Positions 3,222 through 47,700 of a stretch of 64,000 nt of DNA are shown in pieces. The position numbers and the translations under genes were made by a program. Location of the stretch: the NCBI GenBank assembly GCA_964199315.1, contig OZ116708.1:3968001-4032000 (forward strand). The letters are read 5' to 3'. This DNA is from Orbicella franksi (taxonomy: Eukaryota). A model generated the notes under the pieces. The model searched no databases, was not told the DNA's origin, and saw only the letters and a program-made list of their open reading frames with translations. How positions within the stretch are numbered: the first letter of the stretch is position 1; every line of letters starts with the position of its first letter.

Positions 3222-6003
3222 ACCAGAAAGTTTAAAATAAACAAGAGGGCGACTGGAAATGCTCGGAAGTGTGTTCTGAAAGCAGGAAACTTATTGAGGA
3301 TGCTTCAAAATGAGATTTGAATGAAATGTATGCTCTGTGGACAAAGTTCAGGAGTTTTATCTATGAAAGAACGAAAATATGAACTGATCGAACACTGAAT
3401 TAAAGTCAAATCTAGAAATCCGATAAAACTGTATTTTATTATAAACGTTTTGATAGACTGAAACGACTAGTTGATCGCTTTTCAGTGTAATTATATTTGC
3501 TTATGGCTTAAGATATAGTTTTTTAGTTTTAGAATCACTGCAATTTAATCTTTTACTTTCTAACCAAACGGCAAAAAGCTAGTTAGACTTTTTGCCCGAT
3601 TGTTAAGAAGGTTCTGTTGACAATATATATGAAGAGGGAAAATAAATCTACCGGTCTGATAACATCCGGTATCGACTGATACTTTGATGAAGCATTCCAC
3701 TTATTTACTTGTCGGTTAACATATGTTCAGTCCACAGATTGCCCAAAGTAGTAAAACAGTGTGGGGTGATAAACTTGCCAATGATATTTTGTATCCTTAC
3801 CATTGAGATCACATGAAGCCAAACAATTTCATGACCTGTAAAAAAAAATAAAAAAACATTCGTAACTAAAACAGAAGTGAAAAATTTGCATTTTGCTGTC
3901 CTGCATGCAGCTGAAAACGATTTCTTTTGAAAAGGTGGTAAGTGCCTAATATATCACAAAGGGACGTTAAAAAGAACGCGAGCCAATGAGGAATACTGCT
4001 TTTTAACTACTGTCGTAATTACTTCTCACAAAATATATCAAGCACGTCAGTATGTTTTTTATGGTCGGGAGACAGCGATTCATGCTAAAGGAAGGCCAGT
4101 GAAGAAAAATCCATTTCCCACTAGCTGACTTCCCTGATTTTAAGATTTTCAGAATATGTGGAAATCGATATGCAATGGAGAAAGTCTATGTTTACTGCGA
4201 CATTCAAGCTTTGTCACAAAATAACCATGTAGGCAATTAATTGCAAGTGATTGCCTCACGAATGAGATATTTTCTGAAATTTACGTTCAGAAGTGATACT
4301 TTGGTATGATTATGAATACATAAGCAGCTTTTTTAGCTTTGAGATCTAAGAGGAAAATGTCTGTACTCGTTCTTAACTTTTAATAGATTTACAGGCCAAT
4401 CTAGTCTGTCCCATCTCTTTATGTTTTCAGAAAAGATAATTGCTCTTTCTCGTTGGTACTGAATATAGCAAATAATTATTTTAGACTAGCGTCATATGTG
4501 CAAAAAACCGCTTCATATTATCCTAGAAATCGCACGAAACATATTTCAAACTGCAATGACCGATTTCGTTTACTGAGGCTTAACCGAATCACTAGTTAAT
4601 CGCGCGAGATTGAGAAAGCCAACTTAACTTACCTTCAAACGGAATAAGTTTGTAATCTTTTAAATTCATAAATCGTGTTCCTATTTATAAGGAAATACAT
4701 TTGGAAATGGAAAATTGTAAGGATGTATTTTGTCTTTTAATTTCACAAAACAATACCAACAACATTAGTGGATTTAAAAATTGCCATGACGACCTGAGGA
4801 ATTTCGCCCTTTACGTCTTTCGTCACTAAGAGCTAAGAAAAATAAAAACAAAAAAATCAAGCTTTATTTGAAAAGATTTCAAGCTGGTCTTCGCTGTGGT
4901 TTTATCTTTGATTTGTGGTAAAATTGTATCTCATTTATCTTTTGTGGAAATAAGTGTGATTTTGATTTTAAACCTCTCCACTGGCAAATCGTGATAGAGG
5001 CACATTATTCCAATCATAAGGAGGTTGAAACATCTGAAACAAGTAACGTAGTCAACACCACGTATTTCATGAACGAGAAAAGAAAATCAGAGTATTTAAT
5101 TCAGGGAGGTACTAGAGTTATCCTGAATTCACTATCACATTAGTCACTTTTTCTCTGATAAAATGTAAATTTCTGTCAGTCGATTTTCAGCCCTCCATCT
5201 CTCACGATTGTAATTACTGCTTTTTGTGTTCCTTATATTTGTGTTGCTTATTTGATAACAAATGAGCTTCATCGACCAGCAAAATGTCATAGATCAGGCC
5301 GAGTTTATTTAACTGGGAAGATTGTTTTCTAATTTTTTCGATTTTCTAGCGCTCCCATGATTCACTATACATATTACCTCAGTTACAAGGATAAATCGTA
5401 AACGTCCCGGCCCAACGGACTTACGTCATCACCTAAAAAATTGCCTAATCCGATTACATCACCAGTAGCCTCCTACACAGAGGATTACACAGAGGCTCTT
5501 TAGGCTCGTCACGCAATCTTCCTCTCCCATAGGAGACTAGATTACCAGCCGCTGGTCGGGAAAGGAGCAGGCGCCCTTCCCCCGTGGATGGAACGTAGTC
5601 CAGAGGACTCGAGAGAGCCTTCTTCCCACCCCTCCTCAAAAATAATCCAATGACTGGATTAGGGTCAGGGTCACCGGCGCTATACTTAGCTAAAATAAGT
5701 CTACAAGACTGAAAGAATTTTTACAACGTTGTTAAACTTTGAATATATTTCTAAAAGTAATAATATCATTTTGAATACACAGTTAAAATTCTGATAATGA
5801 TCCCTGATGTCTTTGTTTTTAGCAATGTCATTACTTTATGAGACAAGCAAGCTCTAATGTCGTTCCAAATAAGTTCATTTTTGGAGAGACGGGGTGTATT
5901 ATCATATCAGGGTTTTTTTCGTCATGGATTTCAATGGTGAGGGGGAATATTTATAGTTCCGTGGGGACGGATTTGCACACAACAGGGTATTTAAAATAAG
6001 CTG

Positions 6004-7314
6004 TTATCCGTCTGAAAGTGATACGGCGAGGTCATATTGTGTTGTATCTGACCCATTCACCGGTCTATAATCGAGGAGTCTCATAAGAGATTGACAGCTT
6101 TCTTCTATAATATTTACAATACACGGGTCCATGTCAACCCTCCATTTGTCGACAACAACTTTTGAGTTTCTGTTCGTTGAGAAGTGATTTTTTTCTTCCT
6201 TCTCGTTGATTGCGCCCTCGCCAGTGTGAGCTTTTATCCAGTCGAGAGAACTCTGTTGCATATCAAGTCCTGTGATTTTATAAACTCTTCGTAGGATTTC
6301 TACGGGATTTCTAGCAAGGTCCTCGTATCGAAGCATATATGATCGGGGCTTCATCCAGCTCGGTCGGTTTTCAAATATCCTCACATTTTCCTCCACTTGT
6401 TGGCAAATAGTTTTGCTGTATTGTCTAATGACCGGTTGAGGCGAAGGAGTGTTTGTTTTGCGGGAAGCCCAAACAAAACCAACTTTCATATGAGAAAAGA
6501 CTAGCGAGCGAGGATCCCGAACCAGATAAATAATCCCGCAATCACTCGAATTACACAGCGGGAACAGCGAGTCGACCCGAAAGCTGGGGATTCTCGCAGT
6601 GAGAATTTTCAAGACTGTTTTACTGTAGTTTTTGCAGACAGATTCCATATTGTAGGGATTTAAGTGCACGCATTGCAATTTCTTCTTGCTTTGATTCTGG
6701 TTTTTCGCGGCGCATAATGGCGGAGACGAAAGCGCTTTGCTGGAGAGTCTCCTGAACTTCTCAATTTCTTGAATATATTGTGGAAATTCGAATTTACAGC
6801 GCAGCATTCCTTCAAGGAATTTCATCGGTCTTGGGTCGTTAGGTTGCTTTGGTGGAGCGATGCCATACAGAGGCTCAAACAAGTAAAACACATCTGGATG
6901 TTGATTGAAAGCATCCCCAAGAAACGATGATCCCGTGCGAGCTTGCCCTATGATGATAAGTCTTCGTACTGACGTTTTCATGTCCGCCAGCCGCGCAGTT
7001 TGGATGAGAGACGATCTTGACAGTTTCACGTTCTCTTGCCGAGCAGTTTGACCGGGAGACGATCTTACTGTTGCTTTCGCGAGAACGTTCCCTCGCAGAG
7101 CAGTATGCGAGATGATACCTCGATTTTCGGTGGCCCGAGTCACGACAAAACTGCTATCTTGCCTCAACCGTTCCGATTTGCGCGATCTCTCCTCGTCCGT
7201 GTGGATCCGTTCATGTGTCAAAGTCCACGTAAATAACGACAGAGAAGATGCAACAGCTAGGACACCGAGAAGGCGAATGAAAAATTTCTTTCTTATCAAA
7301 ATTGGCGCCATCAT
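6004..7314 (-). CDS. Carbohydrate sulfotransferase (CHST1/CHST3-like Golgi type II membrane protein), intronless, 436 aa
   Basis: N-terminal transmembrane segment; 5'-PSB motif IIIGQARTGSSFLGDAFNQHPDVFYLFEPLY; 3'-PB motif IIYLVRDPRSLVFS; LRYEDLARNP and KWR motifs. Confidence 0.93.
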   Translation of the reverse strand: MMAPILIRKKFFIRLLGVLAVASSLSLFTWTLTHERIHTDEERSRKSERLRQDSSFVVTRATENRGIISHTALRGNVLAKATVRSSPGQTARQENVKLSRSSLIQTARLADMKTSVRRLIIIGQARTGSSFLGDAFNQHPDVFYLFEPLYGIAPPKQPNDPRPMKFLEGMLRCKFEFPQYIQEIEKFRRLSSKALSSPPLCAAKNQNQSKKKLQCVHLNPYNMESVCKNYSKTVLKILTARIPSFRVDSLFPLCNSSDCGIIYLVRDPRSLVFSHMKVGFVWASRKTNTPSPQPVIRQYSKTICQQVEENVRIFENRPSWMKPRSYMLRYEDLARNPVEILRRVYKITGLDMQQSSLDWIKAHTGEGAINEKEEKNHFSTNRNSKVVVDKWRVDMDPCIVNIIEESCQSLMRLLDYRPVNGSDTTQYDLAVSLSDG

Positions 7315-7764
7315 GGTCTATGAACACTAGATACTTCCGATCAGTAATCACAGTTTTGTCAGTCATCTTGTGCACGCAACCGGCGAAATACCTGACAAGG
7401 ATTGCGGCGTGAACTGTAGGGGGGCTAAATACGCGCGATTTAGCTTAGTTATTCCGCGATTTGTGGCCAGCTCTGTGACACAAGTTTCGCATTCTTCTAA
7501 ACTTATTGCGTGATTTGCCGGCTTTTCGCAACAGTTTTGAAAGTCTTATAACGACTACTTGAAGCCTGCTTCGCAGACAGTACATACCGTAGCCCGGGGA
7601 GAGGCGGCTGAGACACAGGCTATACATGCCGCTGGTATACATTACAGGGTTAAATTTCCGCTAACAAAGACGTGATTGAACAGGTGTAGGTCCGCAATGG
7701 GTACTGACCTGGCTTTGCATGTTCGGGAATCAAGAGCTGCAGCCGAGGCCATAAACATGATCGC

Positions 7765-8080
7765 CAAATTCCGACTTTTCCTTGATAAAAATAAAATTTC
7801 CCTGACCAAAGAAATACAAATTGCCAGGTCTACATGTAGTAGCGGCTTCTTCCACTCCTTCATTAAGAGTGACAATTTTTCGACAAATTTTCCTTCTTTA
7901 TTGAGAAAAACTATCATTGAGATCAGTGATCCAATGTTTCTTGTGGCCTTCAATAATATTAAATCAGCCGTATTAAAAATATTTCAATTTTCCCTGACTT
8001 TCCTACAAAAGGTTTTTCCCTGACTCGAAATAAAATTTCTTGACTTTTCCCTGACCTTGAAGAATATTTTTTCCCTGTGG
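7765..8080 (-). repeat. Interspersed repeat fragment with recurring GTCAGGGAAA motifs
   Basis: Four TTTCCCTGAC copies on + at about 7797, 7989, 8016 and 8047; it accounts for most of the ORFs at 7642-8023. Confidence 0.55.
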
Positions 8081-9210
8081 CAACTCTGATAAGCTTGCAA
8101 AAGGCTCGAGCTGACCTTTACCACCCTTTCCTGTATCAGCGAAGCCCAAAACGTTTAAATTAAGGGAGGGGAAAGGCCAGCGCTAGAGCTTTTTTTGCTA
8201 AGAGAAGTAACCACCGTGAAAGAATTTGCGGAGCTTCATTCAATGAAACTTTGAAAAGGAAATTTTATTGCCTTGGTTTTGAAAAAAAAAAGATGTTACA
8301 GAAAAGATTTTCTCGTAAAATAAAACTTGCATGACTTTATAACTGAAAACTTTCAACAGTCGGGATACAAAAGCTGTTTACACAAATCTCCGTCAAGCTT
8401 TCGGAGGGTTTTCAATTACCGTTAACCAATCAGAAACAAGACCGAGTACTCATGAGTACTCCGAACATTCTCCCACGTTCTTTGCAATGGCTTTGCGTCG
8501 TCGTTGTAAATTCCAGACCCCTATTTAAATGATTCCGGAAACGTGCAGCAGTTATTGTTCGGGTCACTGTTTGAGTCATTTATTTAGTTCTTAGTGACCT
8601 AATAAAAAAGTTCGAACTACTGGGGACGATAAGCAAAAAAGCCTCCTTAAACCCTGACTGTTTACAGAAAGCATGGCAAAGAAAACTTGGAAAAATTGAA
8701 GCATTAAAAACTACAACGAAAATTAAAATCTGACGTGGATGGTCTTAACAAATAATCTCAGAAAAACAGATTATTCTTGAATTAGAAGAACTCGACAATT
8801 CTGGCTGACATACTGACTAAGATGCTCCAACAATGTTCAGTGTGTACACGATTCCACAACGAAATACAGTTCTCTTATATATAATATTTTGTCTGGGTAA
8901 ATTATCCGTACATAAACAAATAATGTTTGAATCTGCTGTTCTTTTCTCTTTACCCACATTTAACACGCGAGAAAGTCCGTCAGCGTCAGCTGGAAAATAC
9001 ACTGCCCATGTTTTATATCACGTCAGGAGACCGCAATCGCATGACCAGGACGAAAACTGCGGCTGGACAAGGATACAGGCATCTCACTTCATCTTTTCAT
9101 AACAATCATGTCACGTGTAACTCACGTACCACTCACGTGACAGCTCTTGTTGGATAACGGTCTTTCTTTCTCGTTTGACAGTTTGGAGTAGTTAGCAGAA
9201 GCGGGGAGTT

Positions 9211-17942
<8,732 letters not shown>

Positions 17943-19228
17943 TTTTCGTGTGGCTGGGGCTCAACAGAAATGAAGAAGTACGACAATTTGAAAGTGTCAA
18001 GCTGCCATTTTGAATTTCAAAGATGGACACCAGATAGGAGGGACAGATGGGTATCGTTTACTTGAATATGTAGTGCCCAGTTTTCTCCGATGGTACTTAC
18101 ATGTACGGAAAACGGACGATAACTGCAGAAATTCTCGCGCACTAATTGGCTAATTTTCACTGTCAATAAGCGGACAGACACATGAATTTAGAATTTATGC
18201 GATGTGTCAACGAGCGAGAGCGGACAATTTGACAATTTGCTGTTAAGGACAAATTGATGTCAGTTGTCTTGCTATTGACAACGAATTTCGTCATAACATT
18301 GTCAACAGCTACTTTGACAGGACAGATGCATGAAAAGCTGACGTTAATTTGTTAAATGGCTGATGAATTATGCTCGATTATTTTTTCCCACTGGTTGTTA
18401 TGATTTCTTTTATTCAAGCACTACCCATTCGGGTGGACGAAGCAGTTTAGCCCTAACGTAAATGTACTGTGTGAAGGGGTACTTCCTCGTGGTCACGTGA
18501 CTAACCCATGTAAAGTTACGTCGTTCTCACCTCATTTAGGATAAGAATTAGTCATAGAGCACAAGGATTTTATTTGACACTACGATGTAAGCAATCGTGG
18601 GGTATCCTACTCAAGCTAATTTTAGGGGTCGATTTTTAAGCGACGCGTTAATTTCCATGCATCTTGCCAGGTGCCTTGATTGGGTGAGACGTTGGCAGGC
18701 TGTTCATATTTTAGAAATCACATCGAAGGGACGTAACAAGACATCGGAATACCGAGGAAACAGTGTATTTTGTACATTTTTACAACCTTTTGAGGAAGTT
18801 TATTTAGAAAAGAAAAACTCAATTGTCCAATTATGAAATCTAGTCTAGGACAATGGGAACCTTATGTCATCCCCATTTCGCGCACAAGTTCAATTATTTT
18901 TCAATCGCAGCAAAAATGATAAAGGGATTTAAGACGCAGTTTGTTCTTCCAGGATGAGGAATAATTGTGTGAAAGGCAGTCCTGAATTATTAAATAGCTA
19001 TTAAGCCATTGAGCCATTAAGTTCTGATTGAGGAGAAATTTTGAAAAAAATGTTAGTTTACGTCGAGACATGGTTTCCGATATCCACCATCAGAATACAT
19101 GCATGCAATGGGATACATTTCTGCTATCTTTTTTGATTAGTTAATGTTGTTTTTTTGCCTCTCCCTTTGACGATTAAAGTCAGCAACGCATCAGACTTAA
19201 TCTCACTCCAGGCTTATCCACAATGGCT

Positions 19229-22200
19229 TTACTTAACTTGCTCTTGCAGCTTCGTAACTTCCTTACTAGAGATACATTCTGGCCTTAGGCTTTGCAATAT
19301 AGTTTCTAGATCACGGGGATCGCGTTGTCCGAACTGCATGTCGTCTGTACCTGAGAGAAACAACAGTATTGCATCTAGAATCCAAACACGAGCTGTTCTC
19401 TCCGCGATGCTGTTCTCACCAAGAAGGAGATTGCACCCTTCGACGAAGAAGGACGGCATGTCACCAGATTCAATGTTCTGCTTCATTTGACCAAATATAT
19501 CCAACAACCTGACGACAAGGTTTCTTCCCTGCCATGATTCGCTCTGTAGAACTCTGGCCAATTCAACAAGGAATGCTGTTTTTAGGAGATACGTGTGTAT
19601 ACAATACACACATGACCCCAGACCATCCACATCTGGCACCTTGCCACTCTGCTGGAGGAGTACCTTTCCCAAAAGGTACGCGTCCCTCTTGTAATCTGGT
19701 ATTCTTTGAAGGAGCTTGGTTTCTAATTTCGACATAGAAATACGCCAAACGAGATTTTTGTTAAGTCTTGAGGTAGAAGTTGAAATAGGTTTTGGGACGA
19801 GATACAAAGTAGCTGCACTTTCAAAATGGTCGCTGGAATCCTTAACTCCAGACAGGACGTCCCAGGACTGAGTTGTATAGTTCATGTCAGCCTTCTTAGG
19901 ATCCTCAAAAGGCAAAGTTGGGATAACGTCGACCGTAATTTTCAAACCTGTGTACAAACCCTTTCTCCACTCCAAGTGTAAAATGAAACCAGGTTTAATA
20001 TCACTTACTATCCTATGTTTATCACTTTCTGGCATGAATTCTTCGAGGTAACAACGTATCTCCTGTGGTACGTGGACCCTCTTGAGCAGAAGCACATCTT
20101 CAATGTGGCTGAAAAGACACGCTTTAATTCGCTGGGGGAACAAATATTTTCCATTCTTTAGCAGGTCTCTGACTTTTTCACCGCTCCTGTCTGTCTTTAA
20201 TTCAACTTTACAGTAGCCTGCTGGGTCATCTGGAGAATGCACAGGCACAAAGTTTTCAGCTAAAGTTGGCAAACATAACATGAAGTCAAACTCATCAGGC
20301 TCTCCCACCTTACAGGATTCAGCCATACTTCCTGATAGTTTAACTTCGCCAATGAAACGTGAATCAAATTTTCCAACAGCTGTCATTAGGTCTTGAACAA
20401 ATACCGTTACAACTTGAGATATTAGTTGTGCCTCATTCGACTGTGGCACCTTCCCGACTCCATCAGTCTTCAAGACGCGCTTTAAATACCTTGGCAAAGT
20501 CTGTACGTTGACAGAATCAGATTTCTTCTCTTCCTCTGTAACTTCTGTGGTGGCCACACAAGGGGCTTGGAACTCCCTCATCACGTCAACAAAACCTCGA
20601 CGACAGCAGATGCTGGAAACTGATTCTCCATTGCATGTTTTCTTACGATCCGCCCCTGCTTCAAGAAGAATCCGGACAGCTGTTTTATGCCCATTAAAAG
20701 CAGCAAGGTGTAGAGGTGTAACACCGCCGTAATCTTTCCAATCGACATTGGCATTCTTTTGTTTGCATAAAAGTTCAACGATTGCATCATGTCCTTTTCC
20801 TGATGCGAGATGCAGGGGCGATATTCCATTGCAATCGATCGAGTTCACATCGGCACCAATTTGCAAAAAGAGTTGGACTTTGCGTGCACAGTTAAGTTCC
20901 GCAGCAAAATGCAACGGTGTTTCCCCATGTGCTGACGTCACACTCAAACAGGCCCCCGAATCAATCAACAGCTTTGCAGATTCTTCTGTCCCATCTATTA
21001 CTGCAATGTGTAAAGGCGTCAGACCATCTATGGTTTTGTCCTCTAAGGATGCCCCCTTTTGGATCAACAATCTGATAATGACATTATTCTGACTGGATAT
21101 TGCGTGATGAAGTGGCGTGACACTTGAAGCATCTTTGACATTAACATCCGCGTTAAGGTTGATCAACTGCTCTACCATGTCAATCTTTTGGTTTAACACA
21201 GCATTATACATGGGTGTCTGTTTGCCAGGATGAGCTAAACAGTTAACTGAGACACCTGCCTTGACAAGAAGCTGCAAGACACTTGGCTTGTTACCAAAGA
21301 CGGCACAGTGAAGAGGTGTCTCACGCTGACCGGTGTCATCAGGACACTCCGACAACTGGCGAGGATCGTGACCACGGCGTAGAAAGAATTCAGCTACTTC
21401 GTACTGTCCACAGTATGCTGCACAGTGCAAAGGGTAGTACCCTATTTCATCAGGAACATATTCATTGGCACCAAAAGAAATTAAGAGCTCTACAATGGGA
21501 AGATACGTGGGCTCGTAACGGATGGCTTGATAGAGTGGAGCAGCATCATTAAGTACCCCATCCACCTCGGCACCTGCCTCAAGGACAGTTTTCATCGAAT
21601 TGTATTGTCCTGAAGTGATTGAAGTCATTAGAGGGGTGTGCATAGGGTCGTTGAGGTAACAATCGACCTCCGAGCCCCCTTTTATTAACAAATCCATTAT
21701 ATCCGTATAACCTTGTTTGGCAGCAATATGCAATGGACTGAAACCAGCGCTATCAAAAACGTTCATTTTCACCCTTTGATTGATCAAATACTTAATGATA
21801 TCTACTTGGTGGTTGATCACAGCTTCGTGCAACACAGAAATGCCTCTGTGATCTCCAGATATGGTATCAATGTTAGCTCCATGCTGATGAAGGACTTTCA
21901 CAATTTCAAGATGTCCTTTCTGACAAGCAAGATGCAGAGGAGTGCACCAGGAACCAAATCTGCTCAGCTCAGCAGGTCGTGGAGCCTCTTTCTTGGCACC
22001 TCCTTGCAGTAGATATTTTACAACCTGGACATGGCCATCACTGGCTGCGACATGCAAAGGTGTTTTCAGGTGATTAGAAGCAATACTATTTGGATCAGCG
22101 CCTTTCTCTAGAAGCGCCTTAACAATCTCACCAAAACCATTCCCAGCGGCAATGTGAAGTGGGGTTTCCTTTGCAATAGTCTTCTCAACTCGCAGTTTCA

Positions 22201-22483
22201 AATCTGCCCCCGACTCAAGAAGTGCATGAACCACCTCCAGGTGGTCAAAAAAACATGCAATATGCAAAGGTGCCATCCCATGAAGAGCTGGCTCGCCATG
22301 GTTGATTTCCTGTAATGTTGGTTTAAGCTCAAGGATGGTTTCCCCTTTGCCAAGAATGCAAGCCTTTACAAGACTACTGCTAGTTTGACTGCATAAGTAT
22401 TGGGAGATTTGTTCTTCAAGCTTTAAACTAATGTATTTAAGTGACACAGCAGGAGTATTTCTTGATTGACCACTTCCATCCAT
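19229..22483 (-). CDS. Ankyrin-repeat cGAS-like receptor (ANK plus Mab-21/cGLR nucleotidyltransferase), 1084 aa, single coding exon
   Basis: About 16-17 ankyrin repeats (TPLHxAAxxGH), then GSMAESCKVGEPDEFDFML (GS...ExD), ITVDVIP (third Asp), YLVPK, WRISMSKLETKLL, TYLLKTAFL and PSFFVEGCNLL, all collinear with cGAS/Mab-21 motifs. An in-frame stop lies just upstream of the ATG; acceptor at 22525-22527; candidate non-coding first exon ending at 24468. Confidence 0.93.
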   Translation of the reverse strand: MDGSGQSRNTPAVSLKYISLKLEEQISQYLCSQTSSSLVKACILGKGETILELKPTLQEINHGEPALHGMAPLHIACFFDHLEVVHALLESGADLKLRVEKTIAKETPLHIAAGNGFGEIVKALLEKGADPNSIASNHLKTPLHVAASDGHVQVVKYLLQGGAKKEAPRPAELSRFGSWCTPLHLACQKGHLEIVKVLHQHGANIDTISGDHRGISVLHEAVINHQVDIIKYLINQRVKMNVFDSAGFSPLHIAAKQGYTDIMDLLIKGGSEVDCYLNDPMHTPLMTSITSGQYNSMKTVLEAGAEVDGVLNDAAPLYQAIRYEPTYLPIVELLISFGANEYVPDEIGYYPLHCAAYCGQYEVAEFFLRRGHDPRQLSECPDDTGQRETPLHCAVFGNKPSVLQLLVKAGVSVNCLAHPGKQTPMYNAVLNQKIDMVEQLINLNADVNVKDASSVTPLHHAISSQNNVIIRLLIQKGASLEDKTIDGLTPLHIAVIDGTEESAKLLIDSGACLSVTSAHGETPLHFAAELNCARKVQLFLQIGADVNSIDCNGISPLHLASGKGHDAIVELLCKQKNANVDWKDYGGVTPLHLAAFNGHKTAVRILLEAGADRKKTCNGESVSSICCRRGFVDVMREFQAPCVATTEVTEEEKKSDSVNVQTLPRYLKRVLKTDGVGKVPQSNEAQLISQVVTVFVQDLMTAVGKFDSRFIGEVKLSGSMAESCKVGEPDEFDFMLCLPTLAENFVPVHSPDDPAGYCKVELKTDRSGEKVRDLLKNGKYLFPQRIKACLFSHIEDVLLLKRVHVPQEIRCYLEEFMPESDKHRIVSDIKPGFILHLEWRKGLYTGLKITVDVIPTLPFEDPKKADMNYTTQSWDVLSGVKDSSDHFESAATLYLVPKPISTSTSRLNKNLVWRISMSKLETKLLQRIPDYKRDAYLLGKVLLQQSGKVPDVDGLGSCVYCIHTYLLKTAFLVELARVLQSESWQGRNLVVRLLDIFGQMKQNIESGDMPSFFVEGCNLLLGENSIAERTARVWILDAILLFLSGTDDMQFGQRDPRDLETILQSLRPECISSKEVTKLQEQVK

Positions 22484-23408
22484 TTGAAACAGTCAGAATA
22501 TTACGGATGCCTTATTTTCCAATCCTGGCAAAAAAAACCATGGTACTGATTCAGACATTAAAGAATGAGATTAAAAAATGTACTTTATTACCAGTACTAT
22601 TCAAATTGATCCAAGTGATAATTCAACTAACTTGGGAAAACACATTTTGTAGGATAACATACAGGCTTGTTTTCAATACTAGCTAGTAAGGTTTTGAGAA
22701 AAGAATATTCATGAGCATCTTTTGTAAAGAAAATATTGATTAAATCAAGCAGAAAACCCCAAATGATGAGCATAACTTTGAATAGCATTTTATAACTGAG
22801 CGTTTTACGGAAACTGGTCAGAATGACTTAGAAACCCAAGAAAGGGGACGTTAGGCAGTTTTATGTTTTAATGTTGCATTAAATACAACATATTTCCAGG
22901 GGAGCATGGCCCCAGACCCCTCAAGAAGCTTGCACTTCATTGTTTATCCTGGATCCGCACCTGTGACTAGTAAGTTTTCTGTCACAGACAAGCTGCATAT
23001 CTTTTATGAATACACTGTACAGCCTGTGTTTTTGAAGCAGCCGGCACCCAGCAAAAATCACCACCTACTCCATAGTCTTGGCTGGCTTTTTACTGGCTGC
23101 ATATGTGGGCTCTTCATTTAATTCTTCAGAAAGATGAAAAAATCAGCCTTCTCCTTTATACAATAAAGCCAGCTACTTCAGAAACTTTGTTTGTATGCTT
23201 GCTTTTGTGGTCTTTGTTTCAAATGTTCAGAAATCAGACCTGGCCACTTCTGCCATCCCTAACAACTTGGACCAGTATTTTAATGTGTCTCAGAGATTTT
23301 TTGTTTACTTTATCGGAATCTACATGGGATCGTGATATGGAAATTGAAAAATAGAATTGAATATCGTTGATTTTTCACCACGTTTTTGCCATCTGCAAAC
23401 AGGAAAGT

Positions 23409-23853
23409 CCTGGGGGGTACTCCCAGAAAAATTGGGGGGTGTATGGCCCGCTTCCCAAAATGCTTACCCTATTTATAACCAAAATCTGCGATATTCCCTA
23501 CCCTATTTATGACCTGACCAAAAATTTGAAACCCTATTTATGACCTGACCCTTAAATCAAAACTCCGTTTCAGACCTGCGTTATAATAATATTAGTTCCC
23601 TAGTTCAGACCAATGTTAAATTACCGTAAACATAATTTGTGATGGGCTTTTGTTGATTTTCTCTTCGAGAATGATGAAAAAGTGGCTTCTTCTTAAAAAC
23701 ATACCCATATCAAGACTAGAGTGCAAAAATCATACCCTTTTTATGACCAAAATGGCCAAAATCAGCTAAATTCAAAACCCTATTTCTGACCAAAATGGCT
23801 GAAAAACCATACCCTTTGGGGCCACACATACCTATATTGTTCATTTAAGGGAG
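23409..23853 (+). mobile_element. Interspersed MITE-like repeat, copy 1
   Basis: Starts CCTGGGGGGTACTCCC with internal ACCCTATTTATGACC repeats; homologous to 38750-39166. Confidence 0.75.
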
Positions 23854-26800
23854 GAGGAGGAAAGTTCACTTCCAGTTGGTCATAAACTGCAGCGGATAGA
23901 GGCCTGGGTTAAGTCCGGTTGTGACATCAAAACAAGAACATAGGAAGACATATTTTTGGGACCAAACAAATAGAAACAAAAAAATAAGTGATTTATACTA
24001 GGAATTAGGCAATCTAGCATAATTCCAATTTTAGTACAAAACTGTAAACATTTACAAAAGATATGCTAGATGTATGTTCTTCTTTTGATGTCATATTGCC
24101 TAACTAAATAGTAATCCAAGGTTCTAACTGACCCAACCGGAAGTGAAATTTCACGTTTACAGACAGCTAAAATGTGATGAAGAAAAAAACATCAAGATTC
24201 CATGTATATATTTCCATCAAGCAAACAAAAAAAATATCCTGGCTGGGAACCACTCAGGCTTTGAAATGGGATCTATAGGGAAAGTGAAATATATATAGTA
24301 ACTATAGTGGAAGGCCACTTACTAACATATGGACCCTCAACGCTTCTAAGAACGAAGCATAGAAAGCATAGAGAAACAAAAGGAACCATTCAAATTAAAT
24401 GAGGTGTACACGAGTGGTCCGGTATTCTACACCTAGCCGAACCTTCAACAACAAGGCTTCTACTCACCGCTATCTTTCTCTGCATTCTTCGTGACGGCGC
24501 AGAAAAAATAAATGAAAAGCCGAGTCAATAATATCCTAGCGCTCAAGCCACCATTTTGGATATTTGAATACAAGCAACACCTTATTACCTCTTACATGAT
24601 ATGCTACCACGTACTTGAGCCGGTTGGAGGAGGCGGAGGCCTGCAAATGCAAGACAAATGGCCAAACACTGACCTTGTTAAACGTTTGCTTGTATTGGCC
24701 AGATGTTAAAGCCTTACAACTTTAACATCGTCTCCGCAGTCCCTGGTTCACAAGGTTGGGAAAACTCTACAAATTGTTCTCATTCTTCAACAAAACTTGT
24801 TTATATTGAGGATTTAAGGGGGGGGGGGGGAGCTGTCAGCTTGGTTTCTACATGCACCAGTGCAGGAGGGGGGTAGGGTTAGGTTAGTGGGAGGGAACAC
24901 TCGTTTACACCAGCAGTTCTTACAAGTTGGGTATGCACAGTAAAAATAAAAGTTGATATTCTTTCCAGCCTCATCAGAACTGAAATTTTCCTACTTGAAA
25001 GGAAAGTCCTTCAAAATGCAACCAAGGCGTTATTTTGTTATAATCCATCAAATGCTGCTAATGCACAACTGGTCTAATCAATTCATGGACAGGCGAAATT
25101 GGGATAGCCACTAGATCTGATGCTGCATTATGTAGTGATGGGGCGGATCTGGAGGGGTTTGAGGGATTCAGTTGAACCCCCTAAATTAAAAAGAAGAGAG
25201 AGAGAGAGAAAAAAAAGAAAAAATGGGGTGTTGCCCCACAAAACAGCAGCAAATCGAGCCTTAGCCAAGACAGGCCTTGTGGAAAAAAGTATTTGATATG
25301 ATAATGAACAAGAGATCCTCCATGCGGCCTCAAAAAAATCATCCATGGAAGACGACAGAAGCATATGTGCAGTTCAAACTTCAGACCACTAAAGAATCTT
25401 GGCATTGTGTAGTTTTTAAAAAATACAAGGCTTCAAAGATTCAAGTCCATGACCTAATATATGCCAATGGATAGAGGACCATTGAGTAACATACCAGTAT
25501 CGCAGAAGTCATAGTTTTGACTCCGTTTGTATATAGTCTTGAAATCTTCTCAAGCTAACAAATGCAATAGCTTTTAATATTGCTTACACACTTGACTGCT
25601 CAATTCACTTCTGGATAATCTATCACTCGACAGTCAGAGTTCATCCTATCATCCTCAACCTTCTTCACTGAAAATTGTAAAAAGCCAGCCAATCCTGCCA
25701 AGCCCCAAGAGGTGCCTGGCATGTCAAAATAGTTCTCTTTATGGTACACAGTCCATAGTCAGCATCACATGTTTGCAAAATGTCAAATATCATAGGAAAG
25801 AAGGAAAGAATGGACTAGGTAACAAAATCTGATCCAAAATGTAAAAAAGTATAAAGTATGCAAAAGTCCATAATATATTTACTTAGCTCTATAAGAATCA
25901 GTTCCCTTGTAATTCTTTCGCCGTTTTTAATTTCTATGTGCAAGCAAGACAATGGATGGATCTCTGTGGAGATACATAACTATATATAGTGCCCATACAG
26001 TTTTACAACAGTAACGGTAGAACCCTAGTTAACACATCCCCTGAAAAATACGATGCAAAAATTCCTCAGACAATACCCCACCTCCCTCCAACCCCACATG
26101 TACCCCTATGTTATCAGAGAAAGATATATGAACCTTTTTGCAATTTATATTTTCTTACAATGCACTCATAACAATGGTCACTTCAAAACTTAAGAACAAG
26201 TTCTTTTGATGTAACAACCCTTCTAAAAATAAACTCAAACATAAGTTAAAAAAGGAGACGTGCTCTCCAAAATCAATGTCCTCATGATACCAACAAAATA
26301 TAATACCATAAACTGCCATTTATAAGCCCCCCGGCTTGTAAGTGCCCCCCCCCCCCAACCCCCATTATAGGAACATCTACCTGAAAACCAAAAAATACAT
26401 CTGGTTATAAGCCACCCTTTAGCTTTCCTTGTTTTGAATTCATTTTAATAGTGAGGTTTCTTAAAACCTCACTATTAAAATGAATTCAAAGCAAGAAAAG
26501 CTTAAGCTTAATTACCAGTAAATGAAAAACCTATTTTGACCAGCATGCAGCTAAATGTAGCTCATTTTGAAACGGTTTTTTTAAGCCCCTCCATTTATAA
26601 GCTCATCTACAAGCCCTTATAAAGTTGTATAAACCCAGGCCTTATAAGTAGTTTACAGTAACCTGACAAAACACAGAAATGGGAGCCAAGAACACCTCAC
26701 AAACAACTTGTGCTTGTCTTTTTATTTTTATTTTTCAAAAACAACCTTTACATGGAAGGATGTTTCAGTGTTTACAGGCTTCCTTGCATTATAAATGCTG

Positions 26801-28636: not shown

Positions 28637-31219
28637 TCACTTGTTTAAGGCCAGAAGAGTTAAGCCAGCGGCACAGATACTTCCCACTGTGAACAAACTT
28701 TTCCACATGGTTTGTGACTGCGAAGATTCTGAAAAGTGAGCAGTAAAGCCGTCCTGAAAAAAAAAAAAAAAAAACACAATAAATTCAATTTCCATGTAGA
28801 GCATCAATGACTTAGCACCATTCATATTTGCAGAAGGTGATAATTACAATCAACTTAAAGGGTGGATTGAAGAGAAAGCAAAAACATACTTCCCATTATA
28901 TTATAATCCACTTACTTCTCAATACACCACTATCAATATCTTAAAATTCAGCTTGATAGCGAGACCTAGAAGACACAAACAAAAGAAATGAATAAACATG
29001 GTCATTCAATTTCCTTTGTTTGTGTCCTCTAAGCCTCACTGCCAAGCTGAATTTTAATATATCAAAAACGGTCTATTTTATGTTGCATATCATTTTAAAA
29101 CATTGTAATAAAATAATTCCATACAGGATTATAAAAGGACACATCACATTTATGACAAATATGCTACAGAGTTGCTTAGGGTGTTTAACAAAATTCAGAG
29201 ACCCGAGGATACCACACTTTATGATTATTCATACCCTTCACAGGCAGCTGTACTAAGACTAATGTATTTGTCTGCAACCAAGAAATGAGTTGGTGCAGAT
29301 GAGTGACAGTGGCTTGACAAAAAGACAAATATTAGTCTTCTGTCTGAGGACATTCTTGCCAATAACATGTTCAGTTTTGGAGGAAGGAAGTTCATTTTCA
29401 ATTAGTTTAAAAGCGACTGCGGTTCAAGATAAATGCAATTAAGACATGTATCACAACATACGATATAGTTTAAAAATTGGCAATATGGGGCATTCCACTT
29501 TTATTCTGCACCCCTCTTTACATGGCAAACTCCAGCACAGTGCCTGTTGGAATATTGTTTTTTAAAGCAGCTGAAAAAATTTTGAAACTCTTGGAAGCAA
29601 ACTTCAAAGGTGCAGAAAATAAAAAAAGATAGGGTTTTGGAATCTGCCCTTCATTGCAGGGATGCAGATAAAAAATGGAGTGTTCCAATATATGGTTAAG
29701 CAGCATAGACACCAGTATCGTAAATTTTCCCAACTTTAAACAGGGCTACACAAAGAATTCCTTCACATAAAGTGTTGCTCTTTGGAAATTGAATTTTTTG
29801 TTTAGGATTTTCTCACTGTAAAGCACTTAGGACAGCAATGTATAAGCGCTGCATAAAAGTTTTTACTATTGTTACTGGTATTATTAAAGTTCTTTATTAT
29901 TGTCATTTTGTGATTTTACTAGAGAGAAACTTGCAACACTGAAATATAAAACAGACAAAACTCTCACTAAGTGGTACAAGACATTTAAATTTTTTTAACT
30001 TGAATTTACCGGAAGCCGTGTTCTGTCTTACTGGGTAGAGCGTATAATTTTTTAGTTTGAATTACGTAACTACGACCAGTACAAAATCCACCAAAGGAGG
30101 TACTTGAATGTTAGAGGGTGATCAAAAATGCATGAATGGAAATTAACTCCCCCGGGGCAATATACTAATACGAACATTTGTCAAACGGAAATACTTTTCA
30201 CGTTTTCTTCGCGCGAATTTTCTCTATTGAATCGAAGATCGAGAAAAAGCTGAAATTCTTCTGTTCAAATTTGTTAATGAAGTTATTCACTTGTCAACAG
30301 AAACAACCAGACTATTTATGCAGTGAAAGTTGAGGAAAACAGCAAGCAGAAGAGGTGCCCCGCTGATGCAAGAAATTTTCATTTTACATGTTTACATTAT
30401 CTATGGCCCCAGAATTTGTCTCAAGATTGAAAAATTCTTCTTGAATTTGCATCAAAATAACATACCTAGGTGTTTCGAGACAAAAACGTAAACGAAATGT
30501 CGACAAGATAAATGAATGTCTGACTCATAACTAATGTAAATACAGACTGAAATTTGCATTCAGTAAATTACTACAGCACGTACGTAAGCTCATGACAGCT
30601 GGTAGGCTAAAGAGAAAAATAACAAAAAATTTTTAAAATAATGTAAAATAAATAAAAAAACCACAGCGAATTTTTTCAAAAACTCAGGATTACAACTCAC
30701 CCATCCTCCATTTTCTCTGATCCACGTTAATAAGTTATCGGCTATAAATGAGGCAATCCATTCCACGATGTGTTGAGCCATTTCTGGTCGTTGTGTTTCC
30801 ACGAAATGATGAGCCACTACGCCTCCGAACGTGAACAACGCCACTATTCTGCCCCAGTTTGTTCCTGCTTGAAAAATCTCTTGCGCCACACCGACAAACG
30901 TAGGATAAGCTGTAACTGGTGTAATTCCTAACGTTGTGCACAATGATTCGAACAAATCAGGGTGTTCTGCCTCCATAAGAGTTGCCAGTTTTCGTAGAGT
31001 ACTCGCTGATGGGTTTGTTGGCGTCTGAGGAATAAGAAACTGTCGAGGTAAACCTTTAAGTCTGCTCTGTTCAAATTTGCTCCTTAGCCGGTAAGAAATA
31101 TAGTCAAGTGTGAGGGAAACTCCTTCGTCGATGATTTTCTTATCGTACCTTGACATTTCAGAGGTATTGAGGGTAGGAGAAAGGTCCTCGTTGTTCAGCG
31201 CAGCTGTCGCTCCGGCCAT
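28637..31219 (-). CDS. Pro-survival Bcl-2 family protein (Bcl-xL/Bcl-w type), 211 aa, two coding exons (30701-31219 and 28637-28753)
   Basis: BH4 LTLDYISYRL; LGITPVTAYPTF..VAQEIFQAGTNWGRIVALFTFGG (BH1); WIRENGGW|DGF with the intron at the conserved BH2 position (GTGAGT...TTTTCAG); C-terminal anchor WKSLFTVGSICAAGLTLLALNK. 5' UTR intron at about 31338-31482. Confidence 0.93.
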
Positions 31220-44777: not shown

Positions 44778-47700
44778 CTACACGAAGTAGTTTTTCCTTA
44801 AAACGGACATGTATTGCTTGGACGAAGCGGTCAGCGGACCGTACGAGCCGCTGTCCCCATCACTTAATAGACTCGGCTTCAGATCGAGGTCTGACGNNNN
44901 NNNNNNNNNNNNNNNNNNNNNNNNNNNNNNNNNNNNNNNNNNNNNNNNNNNNNNNNNNNNNNNNNNNNNNNNNNNNNNNNNNNNNNNNNNNNNNNNNNNN
45001 NNNNNNNNNNNNNNNNNNNNNNNNNNNNNNNNNNNNNNNNATTTGGAGTCACTTGTTTTACAATTTGTCTCTCTTTTTTTCAATTCTTCAGAAAGACATA
45101 GGAAAAAAACAGAACGGAGAGTTTTACTTTTACAGAATCACAACGACAGAAACAACTTACCGCTTTCTAAATGACGCTTTATACTCTTGTTCAGTTCATT
45201 TTCTACAGCCTTCATTAACTGCCCGTCTCCCTGCACGAAAATATACAGTATAACATTACTTTAAAACATTTCGTTTGCGGTTTAATTGAGGACCAATTCA
45301 TGGAAGTGCGAAATCCGAAAACATATTGTATGGATGTGCATCTAAATTCTCCATAGAAACTTCGAGAGAAATGTAAGGCAGTCAGTAAAGGGAATCGATA
45401 ATTCGAGCACGAAAATCAGAACGGGTTTGGGCCACAAAGAAGTTACAGTTGTCAATGATTGATTGTGACATTTTTCGTGAAATCTGCCTTTTTTTTTTTT
45501 CAAATCTCTCGAACAATCACACAGCAAATAACCGCGTATGGCAAACATTCTTTGACACTACTTCTTTAATATCCCCGTTTCCCGGCATTTGATTGGTCAA
45601 ATATAAAAGGAGAGTTCAACACCAACAATGTTGAGCTTATTTCAATTTATATAATTGTCGCGAACTTTACCTTGGAGTGCATTCGATCTGGACTTCTTTA
45701 ACATCCCCGTTTCCCAGCATTTGATTGGTCAAATATAAAACGGAGAGTTCAAAACCAACAATGCTGAGCTTATTTCATTTCATATAATTGTCACGAACTT
45801 TACCTTGGAGTACATTCGATCTGGACTTGTTGCAGGTGAACCATTTAATAGTCCAGCAAGCGCATCTGAATGAGGAGACGTGTCACGCTGCAAGCCGTCG
45901 AAATTTCTCCGTGACCTCTCAAAACTGTGAACGAACAACATATTACATCAAATTACTACTTCGCTTGATAGATTATTCACTTACTAGCAATCATAAAGCT
46001 TGTTTTACAAGCTGCAAACCAATTTTTTTTTACTGTCAATCCTTTTCGTCACGACAAAAGCAATTTGAGTCACGTCAAATCAATATTAGTCATGACATAG
46101 ATTCCGAGTCACGCCAGAACCACTCTCGACTTCCAACAAAATCAATTTGCGCGATCGGATATCATTGTCCGAAAAAATCTCAAGTCACGGCGAAATCAAT
46201 TTAAATAAACCACTCGCTTTCTCAGCTATCGTCGCTGTTATTTTAAAACGTGCACTTAGAATCGAAAAGTGCTGCCGTCTTTTGCTTTGAATTCTTCTTA
46301 GTTCCTTGCGGAACGTATAACGTCCGACACCAACGCTTTCCATCTACATGTACACCAGTTTTGGACTGCTTTCTTGGCAGTGGCTTTTAATTAAAGCTGC
46401 ATTGCAAAACAAACACACAAAACAGATGCTTTTCTATGGAGTTTTCACGCCACTTACTTGAGCAACGCTTGGGACTCCGCCATCTTCTCGTTTGCTTTGT
46501 ACAAACGATTGGCCAGCTTATCTTTAGACTTCAACTCGCTTTCGTACAAATCCTGAAAACGAAACAAAAATAACAATTTCAGTTTTTAAAATTCCAAAAA
46601 ATTTTAATAAACCGAAAAGGAAGTTTGCTTGGAATCATTGTTATTAACAGTACCTTATATCGCTTGGCTTCAGCATCGAAGGTTTCTCTCTGGGTTTGGC
46701 TCTCATGGTAGCCGGCGCGCATCTTAGCCACATCGGCCTAACGAACAAACAAAAGGGAATTTTTAGGTCTTGGGATCACAAAAGACTTAAAAACAAAAGA
46801 TTCAATAGATAATACAGAATACCCACACCAAAACATAATTGGCAACTAAAAAAATTTCCAACCTGCCAACGATTATAATTGTAACTTTTGAGTATAAAAA
46901 AGGTAATAACCGTGGTTGAACACTTAGCGGCGCATCGTAAACCCCAAATTGTGACTCTGCTTATGAATTTCGTCACATTTTACCGCTCTTGGAACTGGTG
47001 ACACAATTTCCCCCCCCCCCCCGCCTCCCCACTGATTATGCGCTTTAGTGACATGTTTTCCCGCCCTAGCTACTGATGACGCGTTTCTTGCTGATCCCAT
47101 TGGTGACACGTTTTGCCTCCTTCGCTCCTGGTTCAACTTTTTCCCATCCCTGGCCACTCATTATGCGTTTACCGCTCTTGGAACTGGTGACACAATTCCC
47201 CCCCCCCCTCCCCACTGATTATGCGCTTTAGTGACATGTTTTCCCGCCCTAGCCACTGATGACGCGCGTCTTGCTGATCCCATTGGTGACACGTTTTGCC
47301 TCCTTCGCTCCTGGTTCAACTTTTTGCCATCCCTGGCCACTCATTATGCGTTCGCCGCCTTCACCACCGATTGTGCGTTTTCAGGCCCTTGCCACGGAAA
47401 ACGCGATTTTCCACCCTTCTCATTAGCTACAGGTTTTCCCACCTTCCTCACAAATTACACGTTTACCCGCCTTAGCCACCGGTTATATGTTTTCCCGCCA
47501 CTAATACCGAAGATGTATTGTAATGAAGAACTATGGACAACAACTGAGCAGGAAAGGATCAACATTCCGATAAGAAGGCGAAAGTAGGGTTGGATTGGGC
47601 ACACCCTCAGGAAAACTAACTGCTATGTCACCAAGCAGGCACTGAGATGGAACCCACAGGGGAAGAGGAGCCGAGGCCGTCCCAGAAACAGCTGGAGGAG

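Follow-up and report, generated by a model that had tools for sequence, protein, structure and literature searches.

This locus raises the question of whether a long coral protein, recorded in databases under the name of its ankyrin repeats, is an immune enzyme and, if so, what the repeats do for it. The gene lies on the minus strand at 19229..22483 of a 64,000-nucleotide stretch of the Orbicella franksi genome (GenBank assembly GCA_964199315.1, contig OZ116708.1, positions 3,968,001 to 4,032,000), which we call the window. A first-pass annotation proposed that it encodes a cGAS-like receptor (cGLR) behind an N-terminal ankyrin (ANK) array, an architecture that we refer to as ANK-cGLR. Each part of that reading that could be tested held up. 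Our results indicate that this is very probably a real gene for a catalytically competent nucleotidyltransferase (NTase) of the cGLR family fused to a long ankyrin array. With a slight preference, we also favor the wider reading that it is a functional coral gene for an acidic-class ANK-cGLR in which the NTase is gated by a binding partner, makes a cyclic nucleotide, and is read out by STING. In this wider reading the ligand, the product, and the role of the ankyrin array are what we infer.

The coding sequence is complete. It is an uninterrupted ATG-to-stop open reading frame (ORF) of 1084 amino acids (aa) plus a stop codon, with only about 3 more open codons upstream of the ATG (total open frame 1087 aa), and the start, M..QSRNTPAVSLKY, is kept in orthologues. 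Searches of Pfam matched Ank families (E values down to 3e-109), Mab-21, and Mab-21_C, and nothing else, which is the outcome expected in the profile check that the first-pass annotation had proposed. We confirmed that the protein has three parts: an N-terminal cap, 16 ankyrin repeats with a C-terminal cap, and a Mab-21/cGLR NTase that follows a variable linker.

The gene is transcribed. Most sampled words of the gene were present in 14 RNA runs. Two polyA-RNA contigs (18610-21573 and 21587-22478) are collinear with the gene at about 1% divergence and a depth of 24-32, showing that the coding region has no intron. In the flanks at 18394-18590 and 22925-23318 the RNA depth falls to about 0-2; a signal confined to the gene in this way favors transcript over DNA carry-over. 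Coverage by the RNA contigs places the 3′ untranslated region (UTR) at 18610..19228 (minus strand, as for all features of the gene given below). An AATAAA lies at about 18572-18577, just past the end of the RNA contig, and the 3′ UTR is about 620 nt or slightly more. A possible 5′ UTR exon at 22675..22898 is indicated by an RNA contig record and the depth table. Two features make a short 5′ UTR intron possible, a polypyrimidine-CAG acceptor near 22524 and a dip in RNA depth at 22531-22727; no splice joint for it was seen in the RNA reads. The raw RNA reads were too few to define transcript ends or strand.

The catalytic domain covers residues 701-1040 (19364..20383) and consists of a Mab-21 NTase core and a Mab-21_C helical lobe, as judged from Pfam, fold, and profile comparisons. 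Mab-21 (PF03281) matched residues 721-926 with an E value of 3e-12 (47.5 bits against a cut-off of 24.1) and Mab-21_C (PF20266) matched residues 962-1021 with an E value of 5.6e-10 (39.7 bits against 24.1). To model this half we used AlphaFold2 (AF2) on residues 651-1084 with a 50-sequence alignment. The first-pass annotation had put itself at risk here, in that a fold lacking the NTase pocket would have counted against it. The model has the fold of the cGAS NTase, with a mean predicted local distance difference test score (pLDDT) of 85.6 and a predicted template-modeling score (pTM) of 0.87. The best Foldseek matches were mouse and human cGAS (E value 1.2e-15, template-modeling (TM) score 0.78 normalized to the target) and the oyster receptor Cv-cGLR1. 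When the family profile was compared with the PDB, cGAS and cGLR1 scored about 1e-42, as compared with 7.7e-22 for Mab21L1 (5eog) and 2.6e-13 for MB21D2.

The active site is intact. The catalytic signature had been called complete at the first pass, and this held: a motif scan places the GS motif of the activation loop, with the first and second catalytic acids (GS-x10-DEFD; G718, S719 ... E731, F732, D733), at 20285..20332, and the third acid, D852, is at 19928..19930 in ITVDVIP (VDV at 19925-19933) by motif scan and alignment. All 19 orthologue sequences and the 50 diverse relatives compared carry G718, S719, E731, D733, and D852 without exception. In the profile alignment GS...EFD pairs with GSYYE..NEFD of cGAS and IxVDxxP with ISVDI. 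The WRISMSKLE block (W913-E921, 19721..19747) pairs with WRLSFSHIE, K940 (19664-19666) with the lysine of MKYLL, the TYLLKT block with Y965 and K968 (19580-19591; with K940, 19580..19666) with SYHVKT, and SFFVE..NLL with NYFIP..NLF. R914, S916, S918, E921, K940, Y965, and K968 are invariant across the compared orthologues, down to 54% overall identity. By alignment and predicted model, the C-terminal domain is thereby shown to have a cGAS fold with every residue needed for metal and nucleotide binding. Because the cGAS blocks align and the active-site residues do not vary, the straightforward reading is that of a catalytically competent cGLR.

The domain does not look like one that binds nucleic acid. 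A motif scan found no zinc-thumb motif (H-x5-CC-x6-C) anywhere in the 1084-aa protein, as had been noted at the first pass. In the profile alignment 18 residues separate E921 from K940, as compared with 30 in cGAS, and the 12-residue insertion of cGAS falls exactly there. Many invertebrate cGLRs that sense dsRNA also have no zinc thumb, so the absence of the thumb is, taken alone, weak evidence against nucleic-acid sensing. A stronger case is made by the acidity of the catalytic domain together with the lack of a basic spine helix. The catalytic domain has an isoelectric point (pI) of 5.2-6.8 and a net charge of -1 to -13 in all 19 sequences, and the spine-helix stretch at 682-711 has 2 basic residues (K705, R709), as compared with 9 in the aligned stretch of mouse cGAS. 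The basic ligand surface and basic spine helix of nucleic-acid-sensing cGLRs were not found. As a comparison, a published survey of cGLRs reports a pI above 8.5 for those that sense dsDNA or dsRNA and proposes that acidic coral cGLRs with a pI of about 5 respond to something positively charged other than nucleic acid (Li et al., 2023, bioRxiv 10.1101/2023.02.22.529553). These data place the window protein in the acidic class, which would not be expected to bind nucleic acid, and they agree with the earlier view that DNA recognition in the manner of vertebrate cGAS is unlikely.

The ankyrin solenoid occupies residues 65-640 (20564..22291) according to Pfam, the repeat register, and the model. 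The first-pass count of 16-17 repeats was right. There are 16 canonical repeats in TPLH register, with T, S, or A at positions 71, 107, 141, 181, 216, 249, 283, 315, 350, 389, 423, 456, 489, 522, 555, and 589. In the full-length model the array is capped at its C-terminal end by a helix pair at 622-636, and a cap-like pair at 38-53 precedes it on the N-terminal side. The latter falls within the N-terminal region (residues 1-64, 22292..22483), where it is preceded by a helix at 16-32. Following the solenoid is a variable acidic linker (residues 641-700, 20384..20563), delimited by entropy, the ratio of nonsynonymous to synonymous substitution rates (dN/dS), and the model; its C-terminal part starts the spine helix (683-706). 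The protein ends in a helical tail (residues 1041-1084, 19232..19363) that by entropy and model is the least conserved segment and has no cGAS counterpart in the alignments. In the full-length AF2 model, built on a 19-orthologue alignment, the ankyrin pLDDT is about 85-95 and residues 639-697 are below 50. The closest solved arrays are those of ankyrin-1/2 (4rlv, E value 9e-144), and tankyrase ankyrin clusters (5jhq) are also among the sequence matches.

We then asked how conservation is distributed over the repeats by calculating per-position entropy across 19 sequences, taking positions 2, 3, 5, 13, and 14 of designed ankyrin repeat proteins (DARPins) as concave and positions 18, 21, 25, and 26 as convex. 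Mean entropy was 0.36 at framework positions, 0.69 at concave "binding" positions, and 1.04 at exposed convex positions, and was highest in the linker (1.15). The difference between concave and convex positions is significant (Mann-Whitney p = 2.9e-4), and 30% of concave positions are fully invariant, as compared with 3% of convex positions. The groove of repeats 10 and 11 is almost invariant. In repeats 9-14 the concave residues include 6 acidic and 0 basic residues, plus aromatic and hydrophobic ones. The stronger conservation of the concave face points to a conserved binding partner for the groove, and the composition of the groove carries the signature of one suited to a basic or hydrophobic peptide. 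Judged by these entropies, the pattern is the opposite of the diversifying one expected for the surface of an arms-race receptor.

Both halves of the protein are maintained in other corals. We recovered 18 orthologous proteins of 756-1122 aa, each with the whole architecture and with 96% down to 50% identity over the catalytic half, a recurrence well outside what chance would produce; the orthologues at loci L021-L027 are likewise uninterrupted ORFs. The closest named protein, XP_020600460.1 of Orbicella faveolata, is annotated as "ankyrin-1-like" and is 98% identical (1064/1084). The NTase half holds 13 of the 20 differences and the longer ankyrin half 5. Identity is 86% to the "ankyrin-1-like" proteins of Acropora millepora, A. 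muricata, and Montipora capricornis. The orthogroup occurs in two named families of corals, the Merulinidae (Orbicella) and the Acroporidae (Acropora, Montipora), which belong to opposite deep clades of stony corals, and it appears to be single copy per genome wherever this could be checked. Pairwise dN/dS against six orthologous coding sequences was 0.15-0.28 overall, 0.15-0.24 for the ankyrin part, and 0.18-0.30 for the NTase, with higher values in the linker and C-terminal tail. Values of 0.15-0.30 in the ankyrin and NTase parts indicate that both halves are held under purifying selection. A test of recent divergence between the window and its relative L027 gave a pN/pS of 0.38, and the domains did not differ (Fisher p = 1); the counts are small, and we make no claim of positive selection from them. 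L027 is a 5.2-kb Logan contig of a 98%-identical relative; it is collinear with the genome into the flanking repeats and is probably derived from DNA.

Although the two families are so distant, the Orbicella protein shares 86% identity with its Acropora and Montipora counterparts, and only 54-76% with further sequences derived from corals (Tara metagenome, ENA, and Logan contigs); these uneven identities could reflect hidden paralogy or rate heterogeneity. In assembly ERZ25067868, the region upstream of the orthologue (L022:2690-6351) contains short called genes that match Ank and, weakly, Mab-21, and these may be a decayed duplicate of the ANK-cGLR.

The gene belongs to a large family. In the 497-Mb genome we counted at least 90 Mab-21 matches, nearly all of them in open frames, in line with the cGLR expansion in corals described at the first pass, and intronless long ORFs are the norm for its Mab-21 genes. 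Ankyrin repeats were found in 12 of the 21 long-frame Mab-21 ORFs that we examined, this one included, giving the genome at least 12 ANK-cGLRs, and the window protein shares only 16-27% identity with the other 20 long paralogues of the genome. When the catalytic domain was used in an exhaustive search, 286 relatives were returned. Among the nearest representatives with 700 aa or more, 80 of 92 have ankyrin repeats at the N terminus, indicating that ANK-cGLRs form a large and diversified clade. The protein of the window is a distinct orthogroup inside it. The architecture is therefore not rare, and orthologues are already in RefSeq as "ankyrin-1-like". A candidate downstream receptor is also encoded, since three STING_LBD genes (PF15009, E values 4e-38 to 6e-37) lie within 45 kb at G000:C2:9042452-9087400. 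As a comparison, 47 cGLRs and 2 STINGs are given for O. faveolata (Table S5 for STING) in the survey (Li et al., 2023), which is one STING gene fewer than we count here.

Taken together, these results can be accommodated by the following scheme, which we word conditionally. At rest, the NTase would be inactive. The concave groove of the solenoid would capture a conserved partner other than nucleic acid, with a basic or hydrophobic stretch of a protein as the most likely candidate, at repeats 9-15, the best-conserved, acidic, and aromatic part of the groove. Binding of this partner would recruit, cluster, or release the NTase by way of the flexible linker. The NTase would then make a cyclic di- or oligonucleotide from nucleoside triphosphates, and the product would be read by one of the STING receptors of the coral. 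The most specific form of this proposal, in which the solenoid is the actual sensor of a basic or hydrophobic segment of microbial or host origin and signals through a cyclic nucleotide to coral STING, is one that we advance tentatively as a possibility.

Several observations weigh against the partner-gated reading. The conservation of the groove would also arise if it bound the NTase domain of the same protein or a housekeeping scaffold, and concave ankyrin positions are partly structural in role. In the full-length model, pTM is 0.50 and the NTase pLDDT is below 50 with the shallow alignment, making the inter-domain geometry unusable. K898, which aligns with the lysine of the VPK block of cGAS, is substituted in 3 of 12 compared sequences. 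Raw RNA reads on the gene were sparse in X24 and none were found in X22 and X23, indicating low expression in those samples. Finally, dN/dS of about 0.2-0.28 represents only moderate constraint, and part of the high identity between coral families is due to low dS (0.25-0.30), so that the constraint is moderate and not extreme.

The first-pass annotation had suggested that the solenoid either senses a protein ligand or autoinhibits the enzyme, and conservation of the groove does not separate an external partner from the protein's own NTase, or ligand sensing from autoinhibition. It is conceivable, though we think it rather doubtful, that the array is only an intramolecular regulator or scaffold (for autoinhibition, oligomerization, or anchoring) and that the primary surface of the NTase senses the ligand, which would be a positively charged small molecule or peptide, or a nucleic acid bound in a non-canonical way. 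The groove of ankyrin-1/2 also binds an autoinhibitory segment of the same protein, and these closest solved arrays are scaffolds. Binding in cis fits the conservation of the groove equally well. In addition, acidic stand-alone cGLRs are active with no ankyrin module, showing that an NTase can hold its own ligand site (Li et al., 2023). By contrast, the linker and C-terminal tail, the obvious candidates for binding in cis, are the least conserved parts of the window protein, an acidic groove would be a poor electrostatic match for an acidic NTase, and a 16-repeat solenoid is very long for plain autoinhibition. The output could differ instead. A tankyrase-like enzyme, whose array recruits a protein that the NTase then modifies, or an OAS-like enzyme making linear oligonucleotides that are not STING ligands would be compatible with the presence of tankyrase clusters among the array matches, and NTase-fold enzymes do include protein nucleotidyltransferases and OAS. 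The chemistry of the product is not readable from sequence. We nevertheless regard a different output as improbable, given that cGAS and cGLR1 come first in both the fold and the profile comparisons, the nucleotide-binding blocks WRxSxSxxE and YxxKT are conserved, and STING genes are present in the genome. We also know of no Mab-21 family member that modifies proteins.

It is very unlikely, in our view, that the protein is a non-catalytic structural or developmental protein like Mab21L1, with the array as a scaffold and the acidic residues kept just for stability or for binding nucleotide. For many Mab-21 proteins no enzymatic activity is known. A published screen found many cGLRs to be inactive in vitro (Li et al., 2023). 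Set against this, the GS, E-x-D, and D residues and the other substrate-contacting residues do not vary even between sequences with 54% overall identity, and the profile fits cGAS about 20 orders of magnitude better than it fits Mab21L1. A non-enzymatic protein of the Mab21L1/L2 type would be closest to Mab21L1 and have a degenerate active site; we rejected this candidate, the active site being intact. The remaining alternative, a pseudogene, retrocopy remnant, or assembly artifact whose frame is merely open, we consider negligible. A coding sequence with no intron is unusual among animal genes and expression is low in some runs, but intronless long ORFs are the Mab-21 norm in this genome, the 3.25-kb frame is open in many species at a dN/dS of 0.15-0.28, synteny is kept, and RNA coverage is limited to the gene. 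RNA coverage, conservation among orthologues, and dN/dS effectively refute this alternative.

It is useful to compare the window protein with better known systems. Relative to vertebrate cGAS (4k96, 6ct9), it shares the fold (TM score 0.78), the GS loop, the E-x-D / D triad, and the WRxSFSxxE, YxxKT, and FFxPxxNL blocks. It differs in having no zinc thumb (the 12-residue deletion), no basic spine helix, and an acidic domain, and identity is only 17-19%. An ankyrin array takes the place of the N-terminal tail of cGAS, which is disordered and basic. Cv-cGLR1 of Crassostrea virginica (8gjy, 8gjw) is the best sequence match among solved structures, with an E value of 6e-7 from a single sequence and about 1e-42 from the profile; like the window protein it is thumbless, but it has no ankyrin domain. 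The array resembles the membrane-binding domain of ankyrin-1/2 (AnkR/AnkB; 4rlv, 5y4d) in being a long continuous solenoid with an inner groove. Unlike ankyrin-1/2, the window protein has 16 repeats and not 24, with no ZU5-UPA, death, or spectrin-binding modules. This similarity appears to be at the level of the repeat consensus and indicates no orthology. We also rejected identity as a true ankyrin (ANK1/2/3), the ZU5-UPA-death supermodule not being among the Pfam matches. A precedent for ankyrin repeats in nucleotide second-messenger immunity is RNase L, whose repeats bind 2′,5′-oligoadenylate (2-5A) from OAS, a relative of cGAS. There the ankyrin repeats are on the receptor and effector side and bind the nucleotide, whereas here the array is fused to the synthase, and we found no sequence-specific similarity to RNase L.

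Among cGLRs, ANK fusions are already catalogued (Figures 1C, S2A, and 4C and Table S2 of Li et al., 2023), where 87% of cGLRs are stand-alone. The window protein resembles these fusions in its N-terminal ankyrin repeats, its C-terminal Mab-21 NTase with a putative active site, and its coral origin; its 16-repeat array is unusually long and regular. The orthogroup accessions XP_020600460, XP_029209385, and XP_044164381 were not found in the supplements available to us, and those parts of the paper gave no sign of a biochemical test of any ANK-fused cGLR. Our literature searches on cGLR with ankyrin or cnidarian terms returned no functional work on ANK fusions, and the RefSeq accessions of the orthogroup were mentioned in no paper that we found. 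The first-pass description of their ligands and products as largely uncharacterized is consistent with this. In the same source, Pd-cGLR (cGLR-01 of Pocillopora damicornis, pI about 5.0) and Sp-cGLR2 are acidic, "auto-active" cGLRs predicted to have a ligand other than nucleic acid (Li et al., 2023). The window protein is acidic as well and, like Pd-cGLR, comes from a coral; its activity is a prediction from sequence. Pd-cGLR and Sp-cGLR2 are stand-alone proteins, whereas the window protein carries a 640-residue ankyrin module, and with this module attached ligand capture may sit outside the NTase.

A gene of the Bcl-2 family (209 aa, Pfam E value 4e-30) is located at 30590-31219 of the window on the same (minus) strand, 8-9 kb upstream of the ANK-cGLR. 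This synteny is kept in two other coral assemblies (L021:1532-2077 and L023:432-1019). A functional tie between the ANK-cGLR and this cell-death gene would be pure speculation. Immediately around the gene, the flanks at 18000-18393 and 23319-23900 are high-copy repeats with an RNA word depth of 5,000-24,000, as compared with about 30 for the gene. Many reads of these repeats continue into unrelated sequence, and some have A-rich loose ends at 18239; they are probably dispersed, transcribed elements resembling short interspersed nuclear elements (SINEs) or miniature inverted-repeat transposable elements (MITEs). Elsewhere in the window there is a single-exon 436-aa ORF with a sulfotransferase domain (6004-7314, minus strand; PF00685, E value 6e-16) and a run of 144 N at 44897-45040.

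The wider Mab-21 complement of the genome has some features of its own. Two dense tandem arrays of Mab-21 genes are found on C15. The one at G000:C15:4677541-4845639 holds about 17 copies with open frames of about 580-630 aa in 170 kb. The other, at G000:C15:3205403-3296859, packs about 12 copies of smaller size (about 210-400 aa) into 90 kb, and one of these has an internal stop. Nine long Mab-21 ORFs of 808-1034 aa (L003, L005-L011, and L019, on C2, C148, C14, C11, C7, C4, and C9) have N-terminal extensions of 400-700 aa in which no Pfam ankyrin or other family was matched at E ≤ 0.001. In several of these nine there was no recognizable GS...ExD motif.

The architecture described here was known but unstudied, and the ANK-cGLR of the window is a new, well-characterized member. 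Our analysis adds the orthogroup with its synteny and expression, assigns it to the acidic class, identifies the conserved groove, shows how large the ANK-cGLR clade is, and exposes the annotation as misleading. In the survey, most cGLRs gave no activity with dsDNA or dsRNA, and for the acidic ones ligands of unknown nature, perhaps positively charged, were proposed (Li et al., 2023). The question of what such orphan cGLRs sense could be approached through this orthogroup, a well-defined and tractable candidate for finding a ligand that is not nucleic acid: it is single copy where this is checkable, occurs in two coral families, is expressed, has an intact active site, and offers a groove that can be used as bait in pull-downs. 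The name "ankyrin-1-like" hides immune enzymes under the label of a repeat domain, so that tallies of cGLRs in corals, like expression studies of coral disease, may overlook ANK-cGLRs, which seem too large a clade to be called a curiosity. If the solenoid does prove to be the sensor, this would be, as far as we could find, the first cGLR described as being switched on by a protein or peptide. The ANK-cGLR might then "guard" a host pathway, and its position beside a Bcl-2 gene raises a possible link to the control of cell death in corals.

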